DNA of 63,029 nt, counting the filler, from Reticulomyxa filosa (Eukaryota; Protista; Foraminifera), in the NCBI GenBank assembly GCA_000512085.1. It is 11 parts of 11 records of this genome, joined end to end, with 100 filler letters (N's around TTAATTAATTAA, not from the genome) between each part and the next. Parts side by side here need not be neighbours in the genome. Positions count along the whole stretch, not along the records: positions 48,612 to 54,450 come from ASPP01026105.1; 10 more parts are not named here. One strand, 5' to 3'. A program made the position numbers and the translations under genes. This document shows, one piece after another, positions 3,001 to 54,450 of the stretch (positions are counted from its first letter, which is position 1; each line of letters starts with the position of its first letter). Under the pieces are notes generated by a model. It ran no database searches. It was given only the letters and a program-made list of their open reading frames with translations, and was not told the origin of the DNA.

Positions 3001-3867
3001 GAATGCACAACCAATGCCCGAGATGTTGAGTTAAAGAAAATACTAACAAAATAATTCTCTTTTCTTTTGATTTAGTGCACACATATATACATCACTTTGG
3101 GAACCAAAAGGACCAAGCCTCTGTCATTCACTTTGCTGGACGTCGTTTTAAAACTAATATTTTAGAATGTTTGCGAATATTACACAAATTTATGCCGTCG
3201 TCATCTTGGGAGACTTGCCTCAAAATGGTGGACAAAGTTTCGTATTTTTTCTTCGTTACAAAAAAAAAACGCTGTTTGTCATACGATATTCCACGCAGTT
3301 TTATGTGTGTTGTGTCCAATTAATCACGTATAGTATGGATATACTCCGATTATGTCCTGTTTACGATTTCAGCGAGATATTTGTGATGAAATGATTGACT
3401 TGTTAACTCCTCGGGAACTTCATATTCGTGACAATGAAATTAAAACAGAAGAAACAGAGCCTAAACATGGAGCTTGGAATTTCTGGGGACAAATCACTAC
3501 TGTATGTCTGCTCTTGTTCATTATCCTTTATTCTTATCAAACTATATTTGGCTTTTTTCTAAATAAAAAAATTGCCTAGAACTTGAGTGTTTTTCGTGGA
3601 GGAAATATTGTCCACTTGTGTTTGGCCAATCAATGTGGTAATGAGTTGGAACGATTACAGTGTCTGCGTAGACATATCCCACCAAAAATTTGGACATCTT
3701 TACTTTCGTCAAAAGACGATACACTGGTACGTATGCATTGTTCGTATTCTTTTCGAAACTGAATGTTAATGTTTGTTGTTCATGAATAGATGAAAGAAAC
3801 TCCTTTGGAATTAGCACAAAGAATGGAACCACCAACACAAATTTTAGATTTGCTAAGAGTTGATTAG
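91..3867 (+). CDS. Multi-exon, 5'-partial protein: Asn/Ser and acidic low-complexity region, divergent RelA/SpoT-like nucleotidyltransferase domain, C-terminal ankyrin-like repeats
   Basis: Acceptor ...aaacag| at 90. ORF 97-1443 joins ORF 1509-2348 through a GT-AG intron at 1395-1531 (DSFQK|EMMHML). Motifs GLVKTHERCKLK, DVVRC, RVKNGF and GEVQFLL are ordered like the Rel/SpoT synthetase motifs. Later exons encode GAYPFMYAIW, GFTPLLFALY, GYTPIMSCL and ETPLELA repeats. TAG at 3865-3867. Confidence 0.7.
715..950 (+). repeat. Coding (AATAGC)n Asn-Ser repeat followed by a GAA/GAT/AAT acidic repeat
   Basis: Tandem hexamer/trimer repeats directly visible and in frame with ORF 97-1443. Confidence 0.9.
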
Positions 3868-48611: not shown

Positions 48612-49571
48612 GACGACAAGAGTGGCGATCGGCGCGTCGATTTGGGAGAGCGACAACTTGAAGTTTGACTTTCGCAAATGGATGACACATGCCGAAATTG
48701 GACTGAACAAAGCCATTGCGCGCGATTGGAATTGCTGCGTGTTGTCGAAAGGCGACGAGGCCGACCTCAGTCAATTGAACGCATTGGCAGTGCCACCGTC
48801 CACTGCCAGTGTCAGTACTGGTGTTGGTGTTGGTATTGGTGGCGTCAGTGTCGGTGTCGGCGCAGGAGATCAAAACGCACACAAACATCAATCCACTTTG
48901 TCCAGATTCGCCACCGCCTCGCTTTCTCAAAGCAACTTGTTGATCGGACAACAAGGCAATTTAGGACTCACCACAGAACAGATTCAACAAGTTTTGTTTT
49001 GTTTCATTTGATTTCGTTTTGTTTTATTGAAATCCCTTGTCTTATTTATTTGTAATACTTGTAGAGCTTGCAATTGTATGATAAACTTCAACGACTCGAA
49101 AGTGGCGACAAGGACAGCTTTATCGCGCTGTCTTTGGTTCGCAGCTATGTCGCTGCTGGCGCACATTACAACTTCCAAAATTACAATGACAATGGAAACA
49201 CGCTGCTAATGCTCTCCATTATCAAACCACTCCCTATGATCATTCTCTACTTGTCCAAAAAAGTCTCCGCCGATGTCAACTTTGACTTGCCCAATGCTGA
49301 CGGAAACACTGCGCTGATGCTCGCCATTGAGTATGGCCTGTCCGATGATGTCATTCGTCTTCTTTTATCCCTTACCAAAGATAAAAATGTTGAAAATAAA
49401 GTTGAGGCTTTTCAAAATATATTACTCGGTTTTATCTTAATCACAATCCATTCATTAAATATATACATGTACATACATATACATATTTGTATGCAGAGTG
49501 GAAAAACTGCACTGGCCATCGCACGACAAAAAGAAAGAGAAAATATCATTCGATTGTTATCAGAAGTTTGA
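48612..49571 (+). CDS. 5'-partial ankyrin-repeat protein with a possible GGDEF-like segment upstream
   Basis: Ankyrin repeats NGNTLLMLSI, DGNTALMLAIEYG and SGKTALAIA; GT-AG introns near 48991-49065 and 49401-49497; TGA at 49569-49571. Confidence 0.8.
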
Positions 49572-50401
49572 ACAAAGCTACTTTTTTTGTTTTGTCAAAT
49601 TAAAAGAGTAGATTGTTTTGTCTAATGATAGTTTGTGATGTGATATAGTGTTGCTTTGTTTTTGAATAAAATAGTTTTTTCTTTTTTTTGCATGTGCTTT
49701 CATTTCAAACCAAGCGATGTGGAAACAGCTCAATGATAAAACAACTCCATTACAATTTTATCTTTTTAGTTATTTTTCTACATGCTTACATCTTTCTTTC
49801 CAATACAATGTTATAGTAGGCTAATTTTTGTTTCTCTTTACAAAACATAAAGTAATAACATCCTTGGGTCTGTGCCAACGAAAAAAAAACTATTCAAAAG
49901 AAAATGTGTGTTGTATAAATTTTAGACGGGATATACGGCTCAGTACTATCTCAAAATGTTCTCTAGTGGAATGTTTTGGGATAGAGATAAGTTCATAATC
50001 ATACTATCTAATCCTTATTCTACACAATGCTCATCTAATTTAGTTACTCGTACTAATTTTAATTGTATGATAAGAATAACAATTGTTTTCATTATAACCC
50101 TCAAACTTTGTGAGATTTCTATTATAACGAAAGACAGTATGTTGCTATAAGATATTTTTCGACATAAAATATTTAAAATATTGCACATTTTGTCGCTGTT
50201 TTTTGTTTTGTAAGATTTACAACATTTACTAATTGTTGTTTTATATATTTTATTTTTTTAATCCGTTTCAATTGAAAGAATTAATTTAAAGCACAAACAT
50301 CTTTTTTTTGATTTTTAACTTTATTTTACAAAAACAAAACATTTACCAAATTTACGAAAGCTAAATCAAAATCGATACAAGTGATTGACAAAAGATACAC
50401 C

Positions 50402-51000
50402 TTAAGTGTACGCCATTTCGTACCACGTATCTTTTCCATGCTTCACTCTAGATTGACCTTTCAATACAAACCCAACCTTTTGATAAAACGGAATCAAGTA
50501 TTTTTTGGCCAACAGTTTGATAGTGCTTAATTCATCTTTTTCAAGCTTTGGATGCATCGTTTGCAAATATTTTTTGAGTAATTGCGTTCCAAATTTGTGT
50601 CGACGATACTTTTTATCAATCACAACGGAATGTATGCAAAGGGTCTTGCCACCGTCGATATGTGATTGCATGCTTTCTTCTGTTAATTCGGCTTTATTTT
50701 TTAAATTTAATCCATTAAAAAAATGTTGAAATATCAATATGCAAAAAAAAAAAAAAAAAATCGTCAAATAATAATAATAATAATAAAAGACAAACCAGAG
50801 TCGGCTAGAGTTCCGCAGATAAATCCAACTGCTTGATCATTATAAGTTAAAACCTTGAAATATTCGGAAGCAAAGATGAAGCGATAGTACAAGTTTTCGG
50901 ATGAAGCAGCTTCGTCGGGAGGATAACTTTCGGCCTCGAGTTCACAAATTTTGGCGAGATCGGACTTTTTTACAGCACGGACAGTGAGCAATTTCAAGTT
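50402..51000 (-). CDS. GNAT N-acetyltransferase domain, arylalkylamine/polyamine acetyltransferase (AANAT/PAA1)-like
   Basis: [73 protein letters not shown]. Confidence 0.9.
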
Positions 51001-51691
51001 GAAGTCAGTTTTGGCGGAAGCGTCTTGCGATACTTCTCGAGTGCAATTCTCTGCCCTCACATAAACGTTCATTGTCGGAAGCTTCACCAAGCAATGACTG
51101 GCGTCTGTCCGAAGCAATTCACCTGTGCCAAATGGCGTTTTTACCAATTCCACAAATGCACTGCTTCTGTAAGCAGGCACGTGTTCACGAGTAGGACTAG
51201 TTTGCGTGCCATTATCATCTTCACTATGTTTCGATTCATCTATGCAGAAAAGAGTTTTAATCATTGTCATTATTATTATTATTGTTGTTGTTGTTATTGT
51301 ATATGTTCACTCCTAACCTGAAACAGGGTCTTGTCCTTTATTTGGAGGGACTTCGGCGTTATTGGCTTTTTTGTCTCTTGCTTTTTTATCTCTGCCTCGC
51401 CGATGGGATTCGTCTGTGGATGTTTCGGATTGCGGACTGTCTGATTTGAACTGCCGCTCTGTTTTTTCTTTGCGGGGGCCACGAGGGGACAAGCTGCGAG
51501 GGGTGTGAATACGTGGCATCCCCACGTGATCCTTGGCAGCCAACTCGGCTTCACCATTGTCGAAGCTCACATGTTTCTCGTGGGCACCACTTCGCGGACT
51601 CATTTGCAATGACTTCAAAATACCAGGTGGCCGTGTAATATTGGCGTTTTGAATATATTTCGGTGAAGGACTGCGACCCAAGTCACTCTTT

Positions 51692-51722
<31 letters not shown>

Positions 51723-54408
51723 TGAGCAAATAAATGAATGAATAAATAAAAGAACAAAATAGAATCACAAACCTTGGGTGTACTTTGCATTGCCTGTTCT
51801 CTTTGCTTCTCTCTTTCTTTTTCTTTCATAAGCTCCAAGTCAATGGGCAGCAATGGACCCATATTGGTAGGGTCAATCGTCGACGATTTCGACACCGCCG
51901 GAGTGATGGAATCCAATTTCACCAAGTCATTTGGAAATTCCTCCCACGATAGTTTCCTCTTGCGTTCCTCCAAGTTTTCGTCCAACACTTGGCCCGTCTC
52001 TTCGTCATATTCACCGCGGCTTCCCACCTGCGCTCTCTCTGCTCGAGTTCCTCGCGTGTCATGTTCCTCACGTGTGCGCTTTCCTTTCGTCGAAGATTCC
52101 GTATTGTCGTTTCGACTTTTTTGTCCGGATTGAACGTCCGGCAACTTTGATGAGTGGACATTTTTAAACAAAAAAAAAGTCCGAGTCCGAAATTTGTGTT
52201 TTCCTAATATGACAGAGAAAGAGAGAGAGAGAGAGAAAGAAAGAGTTGTAAAGTGGTACGAAACCAAACTGAGGTGGTGTTTAAAGCAGAGGATTTATTT
52301 GGGACCACAAAAGACTGATTATCTAACGTGGTTGGTGTTTCGGTGGGCGAGTCGTTTGCAAGTGTGACAATATCTTTCATGACGGTGGTCTCGACCTTGT
52401 TGTCTTTGTCCTTATCTTTATCTTTATCTTTAGACCCTCGATTGTTTATTTTTTGATTAATACCATGGTGCTTCAAACTCAAGTTTACATTCTCTCCTTC
52501 TTCTTCCGCGTCCACATCAAACTCATCTGCCAAATCTGTCGACGCCCGATCGAGATTCATCACGTTCAATGTCGTGGCCAGGGTCGGCTTGTCGTATTTG
52601 GGATAGCCCTCCATTTTTATAAAGTTTTCCTCTTCACGAAGGATTAGAGCTCGGTAATCCAGTCGCGTGTTCGGCACACTGGTGTAATAGATATCATTGC
52701 CTGCACTTCCTCGTAACGAATAGTTTTTGCCTATCCATGATCTCTGAATACGTGTATACATACATATATGTATATATGTATATGCATATGTATATGTATA
52801 TGTATAATATGTGATTATGAATGCACAACCCAACTTTAGTTTGATCATCCCAACCCGATTGTAATACAGAGTTTCTGGCAATTTCACACAAGTCAATGGA
52901 AGACAAATTGAACACTTGAGCACAGATTGAATACTCTTCTAACAGCGCGTCTTTGGTGTAACTAGTATTCACATATAATTGCAATTACAATCATTTAAAC
53001 AAACAAAAAGGTTCGAAACTGAATCAATAAAGGATCGTCTGTTGACAATGCCACGTTCAAGCCTCTTTTGAAAAAGTTTGGAAACGGGTTTTTATTGTAT
53101 TCACAAACTAATATGTTATTCGACAATGGAGACACTGAAACGCCGACCTGTGTTGTATTTGTTGTTTTTTATCAGGTAATACCACTACTTTGTCCCTTTT
53201 TTTTTTTTTTATGTCCAAAAAAATATCTCTCCCCCTCCCTCTACCTATTTTTTTTGTTTGCATACTGCAAAATACAAATACATGCCCACCTGATCCAAGT
53301 AATAGAGATATTGCAACACAGGAGACCGTTTTAACAAAATGCCGTGATTGATTGAATTGGCTTGTCAAAACAATTGAGGAGAAGAAAACAACCAAAGAAT
53401 TTTTTTTATAAGGCTATGAAGACTAATGGTCATAAAAGATATGTACATATGTGTATACATATATACACATATATATACATATATTATAGATATTTACCTA
53501 AAAGATAAGCTGAAGCCAAATGATCGACACTGCCTGCCTCCCCACTATGGGGGCGGAAAGAAAAAGTGTTCATTCCTCGTTCTTCCCTCAGCTTGTTTAA
53601 TTTGATAATGTTGACCCACATATAATACATGTACATGCTATCAATAAGAGAACAACACAAGTGTCGAGCAATTGAAATTCGATCAAGTTATCGATGGTTG
53701 TTTTTTGTTTGTTTGTTTGTTTGTTTGTTTTTTTTTTTTGGTTTAAAAGACACGAAAAGTTTGAACATGTAGGGAGGATTGGAGTCATTAGTCCAGTCAT
53801 CTGGATCGTGACGCCTACCCAAGCGAGGGTCAGGCATTGATTCATCGTCTACGCTATCGAACCCAACGACTGTTTCTAAAAACTTGTGTAGCTATCAATT
53901 CAATTCAACATTGAACATTGAATAATGAATAATGAATAATGAAATGTCATGTTAACCTCATCTTTTTTTTAAAAAAAAAAAAAAAAAAAAAAGAACAAAC
54001 TGAAGGACAACTGGAAGGGTCAATGGTGACTTGGAACAAAGGCAAGAAAATGTTTTCCAGCATTTGACCAAAGGACTTGAGTATTCCACGACTTCGATAG
54101 ATATGATACAAGCGCGGGACTTGGATCAACCATCGAACGTGGTCCGAGTGCAATTTGAAGTCACACACCCAATCGGCAAGCACCTTCCATTCGTCTCCCT
54201 TTGTCCCATACACTGACAAGCGACTTTCAATTTTGGTATATTTTCCCCACTCCAAATCTGAAAACACTTGTTGTGTTAATTCCGCAAAGTATCGACCTTT
54301 CATATAATTATCGACTTTCAAAAATATGTTTCGAAATTCGGAAATACCAACCGGGTTATATTTCAGATTGAACTTGTCGAATCTTTCAAATGTGCCCCGT
54401 TCTGCATG

Positions 54409-54409
<1 letters not shown>
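50402..54409 (-). CDS. 5'-partial AMP deaminase apparently fused, via a low-complexity linker, to a PAA1/AANAT-type GNAT acetyltransferase
   Basis: The AMPD exons continue in frame through GT-AG introns 52145-52269, 51688-51772, 51240-51317 and 50692-50795 into the GNAT domain; final stop at 50402. Confidence 0.72.
52620..54409 (-). CDS. AMPD: AMP deaminase catalytic domain (multi-exon)
   Basis: Motifs [89 protein letters not shown]. Confidence 0.96.
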
Positions 54410-54448
<39 letters not shown>

Positions 54449-54450
54449 AA

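Follow-up and report, generated by a model that had tools for sequence, protein, structure and literature searches.

AMP deaminase (AMPD) controls how large the adenylate pool is and sets the energy charge of the cell, and enzymes of the AANAT/Paa1 type acetylate polyamines and biogenic amines. To our knowledge, the characterised AMPDs, namely yeast Amd1, human AMPD1-3 and Arabidopsis FAC1 (Pfam family PF19326), end soon after profile position ~625. Here, we describe a locus of the foraminiferan Reticulomyxa filosa (assembly GCA_000512085.1) at which an AMPD appears to continue into an AANAT-like N-acetyltransferase domain of the GNAT type. The locus lies on the minus strand of positions 48612-54450 (record ASPP01026105.1) of a 63,029-nucleotide (nt) stretch of DNA, referred to below as the window, which joins 11 parts of this genome. 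A first-pass annotation of the sequence had proposed such a fusion. In our reading, with a probability of about 0.75, the locus is one gene encoding an AMPD to which a small five-stranded beta motif and an AANAT/Paa1-type GNAT domain are attached through a long disordered linker. We found no paper linking AMPD to a GNAT domain or treating AMPD in Foraminifera in that sense.

The combination of an A_deaminase and an acetyltransferase domain, for which the first-pass annotation had suggested a search, was found in at least four other sequences; the four fused relatives most likely stem from four other organisms. Queries taken from the window were single exons, and the other searches used proteins returned from the databases. 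A profile that held the standalone GNAT protein P0001 and the two GNAT exons of the window (G1 and G2; Table 1) as separate rows was searched against a library of 1.84 billion proteins. It returned mostly standalone GNATs and, in addition, P0013, a protein of 576 residues with an AMP_deaminase domain at residues 1-198 (profile positions 433-626), a linker and a GNAT domain at residues 413-573. P0013 is encoded on scaffold_28958 of a Tara Oceans metagenome (L003) and in a separate Logan assembly (L004). On L003, its open reading frame (ORF) is uninterrupted over 581 codons, earlier AMPD exons lie upstream on the same strand, and an intron occurs at the 'PPY' position also used in the window. 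A region-restricted search with P0013 identified P0275 on scaffold_1556 of the LUOE22 metagenome (L013), where the C-terminal end of an AMPD, a linker of ~115 residues, the small beta motif and a canonical GNAT are contained in one ORF; P0275 is 35% identical to the window over the motif and the N-terminal half of the GNAT domain and 48% over G2. A whole-protein search with P0013 further yielded P0154 of Nonionella stella (EukProt EP01083_P024731; 894 residues, AMP_deaminase 154-690, GNAT 771-882), and BLASTP with the window exons yielded P0155 (JGI 3300017224), a complete ORF of 886 residues on the 3.4-kb contig L006 with a weak GNAT after the AMPD. As MMETSP transcripts occur in the same sample series, L006 is presumably a contig from a transcriptome.

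These independent relatives support the proposal that AMPD, linker and AANAT-type GNAT form a single gene: the junction is uninterrupted in the ORFs of P0013 and P0275, with which the window shares gene order and motif, and an AMPD with a C-terminal GNAT is likewise present in P0154 and P0155. In P0013 and P0275, neither of which is annotated, the C-terminus of an AMPD is followed, as in the window gene, by a linker that is not conserved, a small beta motif with 'TPxGxG' and a GNAT of the canonical AANAT-like form, with identities to the window of 48-51% in the C-terminal half of the GNAT and 67-76% in several AMPD exons. They differ from it in that a single ORF with a linker of ~115 residues spans the junction, whereas the window linker of ~400 residues requires three short introns. 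P0154 and P0155 are both full-length AMPDs with a C-terminal GNAT, each in one ORF, but their linkers are short (60-80 residues), they have no small motif and their GNAT is partly degenerate; on L006, the fused gene is followed by a canonical motif-GNAT gene that is separate from it. The GNATs of P0154 and P0155 are without the 'LTxESM..H' loop and have the conserved His replaced, and that of P0155 is also without the acetyl-CoA motif. Judged by these losses, the two fused domains are candidate pseudoenzymes kept at the C-terminus of AMPD.

In the window, seven minus-strand blocks correspond to the C-terminal 60% of an AMPD; the 5' part of the gene lies beyond the edge of the piece at 54450, and Pfam profile positions below ~270 fall outside it. 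Single exons match the PF19326 profile, and the other AMPD exons are 60-87% identical to foraminiferal AMPDs. The active-site motifs expected in this half are present, with the His and Glu of 'PHxGE' (here 'PHSGE') and the Asp pair of 'STDDP'. The six AMPD introns, placed by homology and frame, are 58-142 nt long with a GC content of 0.19-0.32; all are GT..AG with weak acceptors, and their donors are rich in GTT (GTTTGT, GTTCAA, GTTTCG, GTTGGG). The nearest AMPDs to the window and to the fused relatives are foraminiferal (Bolivina argentea P0156/P0157, 82-86% identity in three exons) or otherwise rhizarian. A tree from the single exon e1 placed the window outside the clade of Reticulomyxa P0184 and Ammonia and resolved nothing further. 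P0184, the annotated AMPD of R. filosa (L014, ASPP01008319.1), is a different paralogue with far fewer introns. It carries a non-conserved tail of 250 residues that ends in a hydrophobic, transmembrane-like stretch, and ~25 residues of the annotated protein resemble a translated intron.

When the six AMPD introns and the four introns of the linker and GNAT region are removed, the minus strand forms a single frame of 982 codons from 54408 to 50405. The four introns put forward in the first-pass annotation, 52269-52145 (125 nt), 51772-51688 (85 nt), 51317-51240 (78 nt) and 50795-50692 (104 nt), are all GT-AG and AT-rich (GC 0.13-0.35), and their lengths fit the phase fully. Across the model, the exon-like blocks have a GC content of 0.37-0.50 compared to 0.13-0.35 in the intervening segments, all of which are GT..AG; the piece as a whole (GC 0.375) alternates between GC-richer and very AT-rich blocks. 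The frame does run from the AMPD into the linker, as had been claimed, but the linker is somewhat longer than the ~350 residues then given: from the end of the AMPD domain to the GNAT at 50979, ~123, 124, 123 and 86 residues are contributed by the AMPD tail, the linker exons L2 and L3, and G1.

Two models trained solely on exons proven by homology, one of positional composition and one of codon log-odds, were used to score coding potential in this part. Both favour the frame of the fusion model for the AMPD tail, L2, L3 and the N-terminal part of G1, and both rate the segment 51317-51240 as non-coding in each of the six frames. The tail, which is acidic and Lys-rich, begins with a stretch resembling P0272, P0275 and P0156, and its model frame is the best of six. 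For L2, the model frame has a posterior of 0.99 by positional composition and a codon log-odds of 63.6, compared to 55.1 for the next-best frame, which is antisense; for L3, the posterior is 0.996 and the log-odds 69.2 versus at most 41.5 for the other frames. The GC content of the linker exons (0.49-0.50) is if anything above that of the conserved exons. If coding, L2 must be joined to an AMPD exon because it has no ATG until its last 29 codons. The donor of the second linker intron has the same form as those of the homology-verified GNAT intron and of AMPD intron 1. Antisense coding in L2 and L3 was ruled out, as those frames contain stops and score lower, the margin for L2 being modest; skipping of exons, with L2 or the AMPD tail joined straight to G1, was discarded since phase-0 donors are incompatible with the phase-1 acceptor at 51240.

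Two further features of the linker were observed. In place of its first, 125-nt intron, an in-frame 56-nt intron (52259-52204, minus strand) with a stronger, pyrimidine-rich acceptor, 'CTCTGTCATATTAG', could be used, which would add ~20 residues to the linker and keep the frame. Within L3 (51624-51562, minus strand), 'GILK' is followed after 12 residues by 'KHVSF', with several Ser/Thr-Pro sites around; neither P0013 nor P0275 conserves this stretch. The sequence fits what we take to be the consensus of the SILK ([GS]IL[KR]) and RVxF ([KR]x0-1[VI]x[FW]) docking motifs for protein phosphatase 1, and could reflect phospho-regulation of the linker or chance.

At the junction of L3 and G1, the first-pass annotation had placed the sole stop between the two domains inside a splice donor. 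A TAG at 51315-51313 does directly follow the donor G/GT, which is in phase with the acceptor at 51240; it is not the only in-frame stop, however, since a TGA lies at 51309-51307, and both are inside the putative 78-nt intron. The acceptor is pyrimidine-rich and ends in CATAG, and of in-frame GT..AG pairs spaced by 50-150 nt there are two at this junction, both from the donor at 51317. The nominal start of the GNAT ORF, described earlier as an ATG in (AAT)n sequence ~45 nt past the stop, is found at 51270, 42 nt after the TAG in AAT/ACA-rich sequence. This ATG and that at 51264 are the only ones in frame upstream of the GNAT motif, and both lie within the putative intron. A start at the internal Met (~51076) was ruled out because this Met is a conserved residue of the small motif; GNAT coding therefore begins at ATG 51270 or 51264 or is spliced to L3. 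We infer that the segment 51317-51240 is spliced out, giving one polypeptide with both domains, and on these sequence grounds a fused mRNA may be predicted with good confidence. Retention of the segment would give an AMPD-only product, and an additional GNAT-only or AMPD-only isoform beside the fused mRNA is possible.

The C-terminal domain itself is a GNAT encoded by two exons, of which G2 alone passes the Pfam cut-offs for Acetyltransf_10 (39.3 bits), Acetyltransf_7 (31.4 bits) and Acetyltransf_1 (28.9 bits). Across its intron, the junction 'GTLADS/A/ELTEES' aligns without gaps to the intron-free P0001, with 49% identity over both halves. The earlier assignment to the AANAT type held, as serotonin N-acetyltransferase accounts for each of the five best sequence matches in the PDB (E 1e-5, C-terminal half alone) and the fold of the relative P0275, which is 48% identical to G2, agrees. 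An AlphaFold model of P0275 residues 140-368 has a mean predicted local distance difference test score (pLDDT) of 91; its top Foldseek matches are 1L0C, 1IB1 and 1CJW, and it superimposes on AANAT entries with template-modelling scores of 0.82-0.88 by target length and root-mean-square deviations of 1.6-1.9 Å. In the same model, the small motif forms a five-stranded beta unit ahead of the GNAT (pLDDT 90-95). This motif of ~38 residues reads hydrophobic-x-T-P/Q-x-G-x-G, followed by a conserved Met and then a Cys. It precedes the GNAT in the window, P0013, P0275 and P0007 and occurs twice in P0006, and was seen in none of the other ~265 fetched proteins. A word search with G1 returned one homologue only, close relatives of the organism being absent from that collection in this length range, and a locus search with the GNAT alignment returned distant GNATs only (33-41% identity), with no AMPD context.

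Elsewhere, members of this AANAT-like GNAT subfamily are fused to PhzF-like domains (sometimes with a double GNAT), to an acid phosphatase domain and to an HMG box (P0003, P0142, P0276, P0277, P0002, P0044), so that the subfamily appears to be a frequent fusion partner. Within 4.9 kb, the contig of the standalone P0001 (L001/L002, JGI 3300016811) also has an ORF for a protein kinase on the strand of P0001 and, on the other strand, a long ORF; either the genome is very compact or the contig is a read-through assembly.

Several observations on the linker, on the relatives and on the GNAT residues weigh against a single gene for a fused, active enzyme. By itself, phase fit is weak evidence at the first two linker junctions, which have 5 and 17 in-frame GT..AG pairs, respectively, spaced by 50-150 nt, and the weak splice signals of this genome leave the exact ends of the linker introns uncertain. 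No homologue of L2 or L3 was found, the linker exons and the small motif are without a Pfam match at E values up to 10, and the linker exceeds those of the fused relatives two- to fourfold in length. The locus might instead hold two tandem genes, in which an AMPD with a long disordered C-terminal tail ends at the TAG at 51313 and a motif-GNAT protein is translated separately from ATG 51270, driven by an internal promoter in the AMPD tail or carried on a shared read-through transcript; such an arrangement could coexist with a fused isoform. That ATG would yield a standalone motif-GNAT protein with an N-terminus similar in length to that of P0006. Standalone genes of this type exist in P0007 (L005, between unrelated genes) and P0006 (an MMETSP transcript). 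These are the closest relatives of G1 and G2 (39%/54% and 37%/50% identity, respectively) and carry the small motif in one or two copies, but are independent genes of 231 and 309 residues with their own ATG. On L006, the stop of the fused P0155 is followed after ~600 nt by the first twelve codons of P0006, with which the contig ends, so tandems of a fused AMPD with an independent GNAT gene are possible, and long GNAT-less tails are found in the foraminiferal AMPDs of Bolivina (P0272/P0274) and Reticulomyxa (P0184). We nevertheless consider tandem genes rather improbable in the window. The 42 nt from stop to ATG leave no room for a 3' end and a promoter, and an intergenic gap of this size is not expected because the genome is not so compact, with spacers of ~830 nt in this piece (and of ~600 nt on L006). 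The sequence that contains ATG 51270 and the first ten codons from it has a GC content of 0.26, scores as non-coding and ends in the CATAG acceptor; the stop overlaps a donor in phase with that acceptor, and the same parts are found in one ORF in two relatives. A chimeric contig or a pseudogene with a decaying GNAT copy might be suspected in a short piece of a genome rich in homopolymers and microsatellites; as the same gene order occurs on four independent contigs of other organisms, every exon is conserved with an open frame and the two GNAT halves meet exactly across their intron, we give this explanation hardly any weight.

If the two domains do form one protein, the GNAT may still not be catalytic but serve as a regulatory or ligand-binding module of AMPD, for example as a sensor of acetyl-CoA/CoA or as an oligomerisation domain. 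The degenerate yet retained GNATs of P0154 and P0155 would fit such a role. So would the acetyl-CoA motif of the window, which reads RRHKFG in place of Q/R-x-x-G-x-G/A and has Lys for the first Gly, a residue retained in P0013, P0275, P0006, P0007 and P0001. In addition, the position of AANAT His120 is occupied by Cys ('LCIHS'), as in the close relatives aligned, whereas the equivalents of His122 and Tyr168 are present (residue numbers presumably those of sheep AANAT). On the other hand, the window domain is otherwise conserved like the standalone and presumably active forms, with 48-54% identity, and keeps the 'LTxESM..H' loop, 'LCIHS' and 'HGKDTWYEM'. A purely non-catalytic module therefore seems unlikely to us, if a good deal less so than an assembly artefact. 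Given that His122 and Tyr168 have their counterparts and that the acetyl-CoA motif is mostly intact, the GNAT of the fused protein is probably an active amine N-acetyltransferase. That the GNATs of P0154 and P0155 are degenerate and still retained suggests an additional role of the domain for AMPD itself, for example in ligand sensing or assembly.

How the two domains might work together can be outlined tentatively. The GNAT domain would acetylate polyamines or arylalkylamines, like its yeast and vertebrate relatives, and through its attachment to the AMPD oligomer the breakdown of adenylates would be linked to the status of acetyl-CoA or polyamines. Both yeast and mammalian AMPD are reported to be activated by polyamines, which provides a rationale for tethering a polyamine acetyltransferase to the enzyme: local polyamine acetylation could tune AMPD. 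Alternatively, the GNAT domain could sense acetyl-CoA. We regard an amine acetyltransferase that couples AMPD to acetyl-CoA or polyamine status as plausible, at somewhat below even odds. More speculative, and on balance doubtful, is the broader idea that the recurrent AMPD-GNAT fusion marks an unrecognised regulatory link from adenylate catabolism to amine acetylation or acetyl-CoA status, in which the GNAT would acetylate a polyamine activator or AMPD, or sense acetyl-CoA, and the degenerate GNATs would be derived pseudoenzyme regulators. If this were true, 'Rosetta-stone' logic would predict the same coupling where AMPD and GNAT are separate proteins. Retention of the fusion in several lineages, in active-looking as well as degenerate forms, is evidence of the sort from which a functional link between pathways is predicted. 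The locus also adds to the few gene-level facts for Foraminifera, which are sparse in genomic data. Since domain fusions are common in protists, the interest of the finding is moderate until biochemistry is added.

Table 1 Features of the minus-strand AMPD-GNAT gene model in the window, ordered along the direction of transcription.
Feature	Position	Strand	Description and evidence
AMPD exon, first in piece	54001-54409	-	Pfam AMP_deaminase, 149.5 bits, profile positions 278-388
AMPD intron	53892-54000	-	GT..AG, GC 0.19
AMPD exon	53767-53891	-	open frame with conserved stretch; BLASTP to foraminiferal AMPDs
AMPD exon with catalytic 'FRPHSGEAG'	53498-53637	-	82-87% identity to P0155/P0156; 'PPY' intron position common to L003
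AMPD exon	53290-53360	-	frame, translation, BLASTP
AMPD exon with active-site 'STDDP' ('ALSTDDPLL')	53020-53147	-	frame, translation, BLASTP
AMPD exon	52835-52961	-	86% identity to Bolivina P0156
Last AMPD exon	52270-52743	-	Pfam AMP_deaminase positions 579-625 of 630, 31.4 bits; domain end ~52640
Putative linker intron 1	52145-52269	-	GTTTGG...AAAG; GC 0.35; in phase
Linker exon L2	51773-52144	-	124 codons, charged; open frame
Putative linker intron 2	51688-51772	-	GTTTGT...A23 G; GC 0.14; phase 0 on both sides
Linker exon L3	51318-51687	-	123 codons, rich in Ser/Pro/Arg/Lys; open frame
Putative intron between linker and GNAT exons	51240-51317	-	G/GTTAGG ... CTCTTTTCTGCATAG/A; GC 0.26; coding log-odds negative in six of six frames
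Exon G1	50796-51239	-	short N-terminal part, small beta motif (51156-51043), N-terminal half of GNAT (50979-50796); BLASTP to P0275 (35% over 113 residues), P0007, P0006
GNAT intron	50692-50795	-	GC 0.13; proven by homology
Exon G2	50402-50691	-	C-terminal half of GNAT, acetyl-CoA motif, equivalents of AANAT His122 and Tyr168, stop TAA 50404-50402; Pfam and PDB matches
AATAAA hexamer, possible poly(A) signal	50320-50325	-	~77 nt 3' of the stop; direct reading, putative function

Downstream of the GNAT stop, an AT-rich spacer (GC 0.23-0.29) of ~830 nt separates the gene from its neighbour in a 3'-3' arrangement. This neighbour is a convergent ankyrin-repeat gene on the plus strand (48622-49571; Pfam Ank_2, 46.9 bits) that is cut by the edge of the piece and is interrupted near 49400-49480 by at least one short intron rich in microsatellites. 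The introns of the window are crowded with TA/CA microsatellites and with homopolymer runs 22-31 nt long (for example 51689-51711, 53971-53992, 54411-54441, 53439-53493, 52773-52806), and the donors are mostly of the GTT type rather than GTAAGT. Long intragenic A/T runs could prime oligo-dT internally and give truncated cDNAs, and Lys-rich 'tails' like the one of Bolivina P0156 may have arisen in this way. Caution is needed with gene models from this genome, as its splice signals are weak (GTT-rich donors and short, AT-rich homopolymer introns) and automatic annotation could split genes of this kind. On L006, a GT at 2755, six codons before the stop of P0155, is in phase with an AG at 3367-3368 that lies one base ahead of the P0006 start codon; if spliced, this pair would add P0006, with two motifs and a canonical GNAT, to an AMPD with a degenerate GNAT. 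The chance of such a phase agreement is 1 in 3, and the intron of ~610 nt would be far longer than the others seen.

Compared to the characterised AMPDs, the window gene shares the catalytic-domain profile and the 'PHSGE' and 'STDDP' motifs, but it continues for ~640 more codons into a second enzyme domain. That domain we take to resemble yeast Paa1. Vertebrate AANAT is its best sequence match in the PDB and the best fold match of its relative P0275, and the equivalents of His122 and Tyr168 are common to both. Unlike AANAT, the window GNAT has Cys in place of His120 and, in the acetyl-CoA motif, Lys where the first Gly is expected, carries a beta domain in front, and would be tethered to an AMPD.

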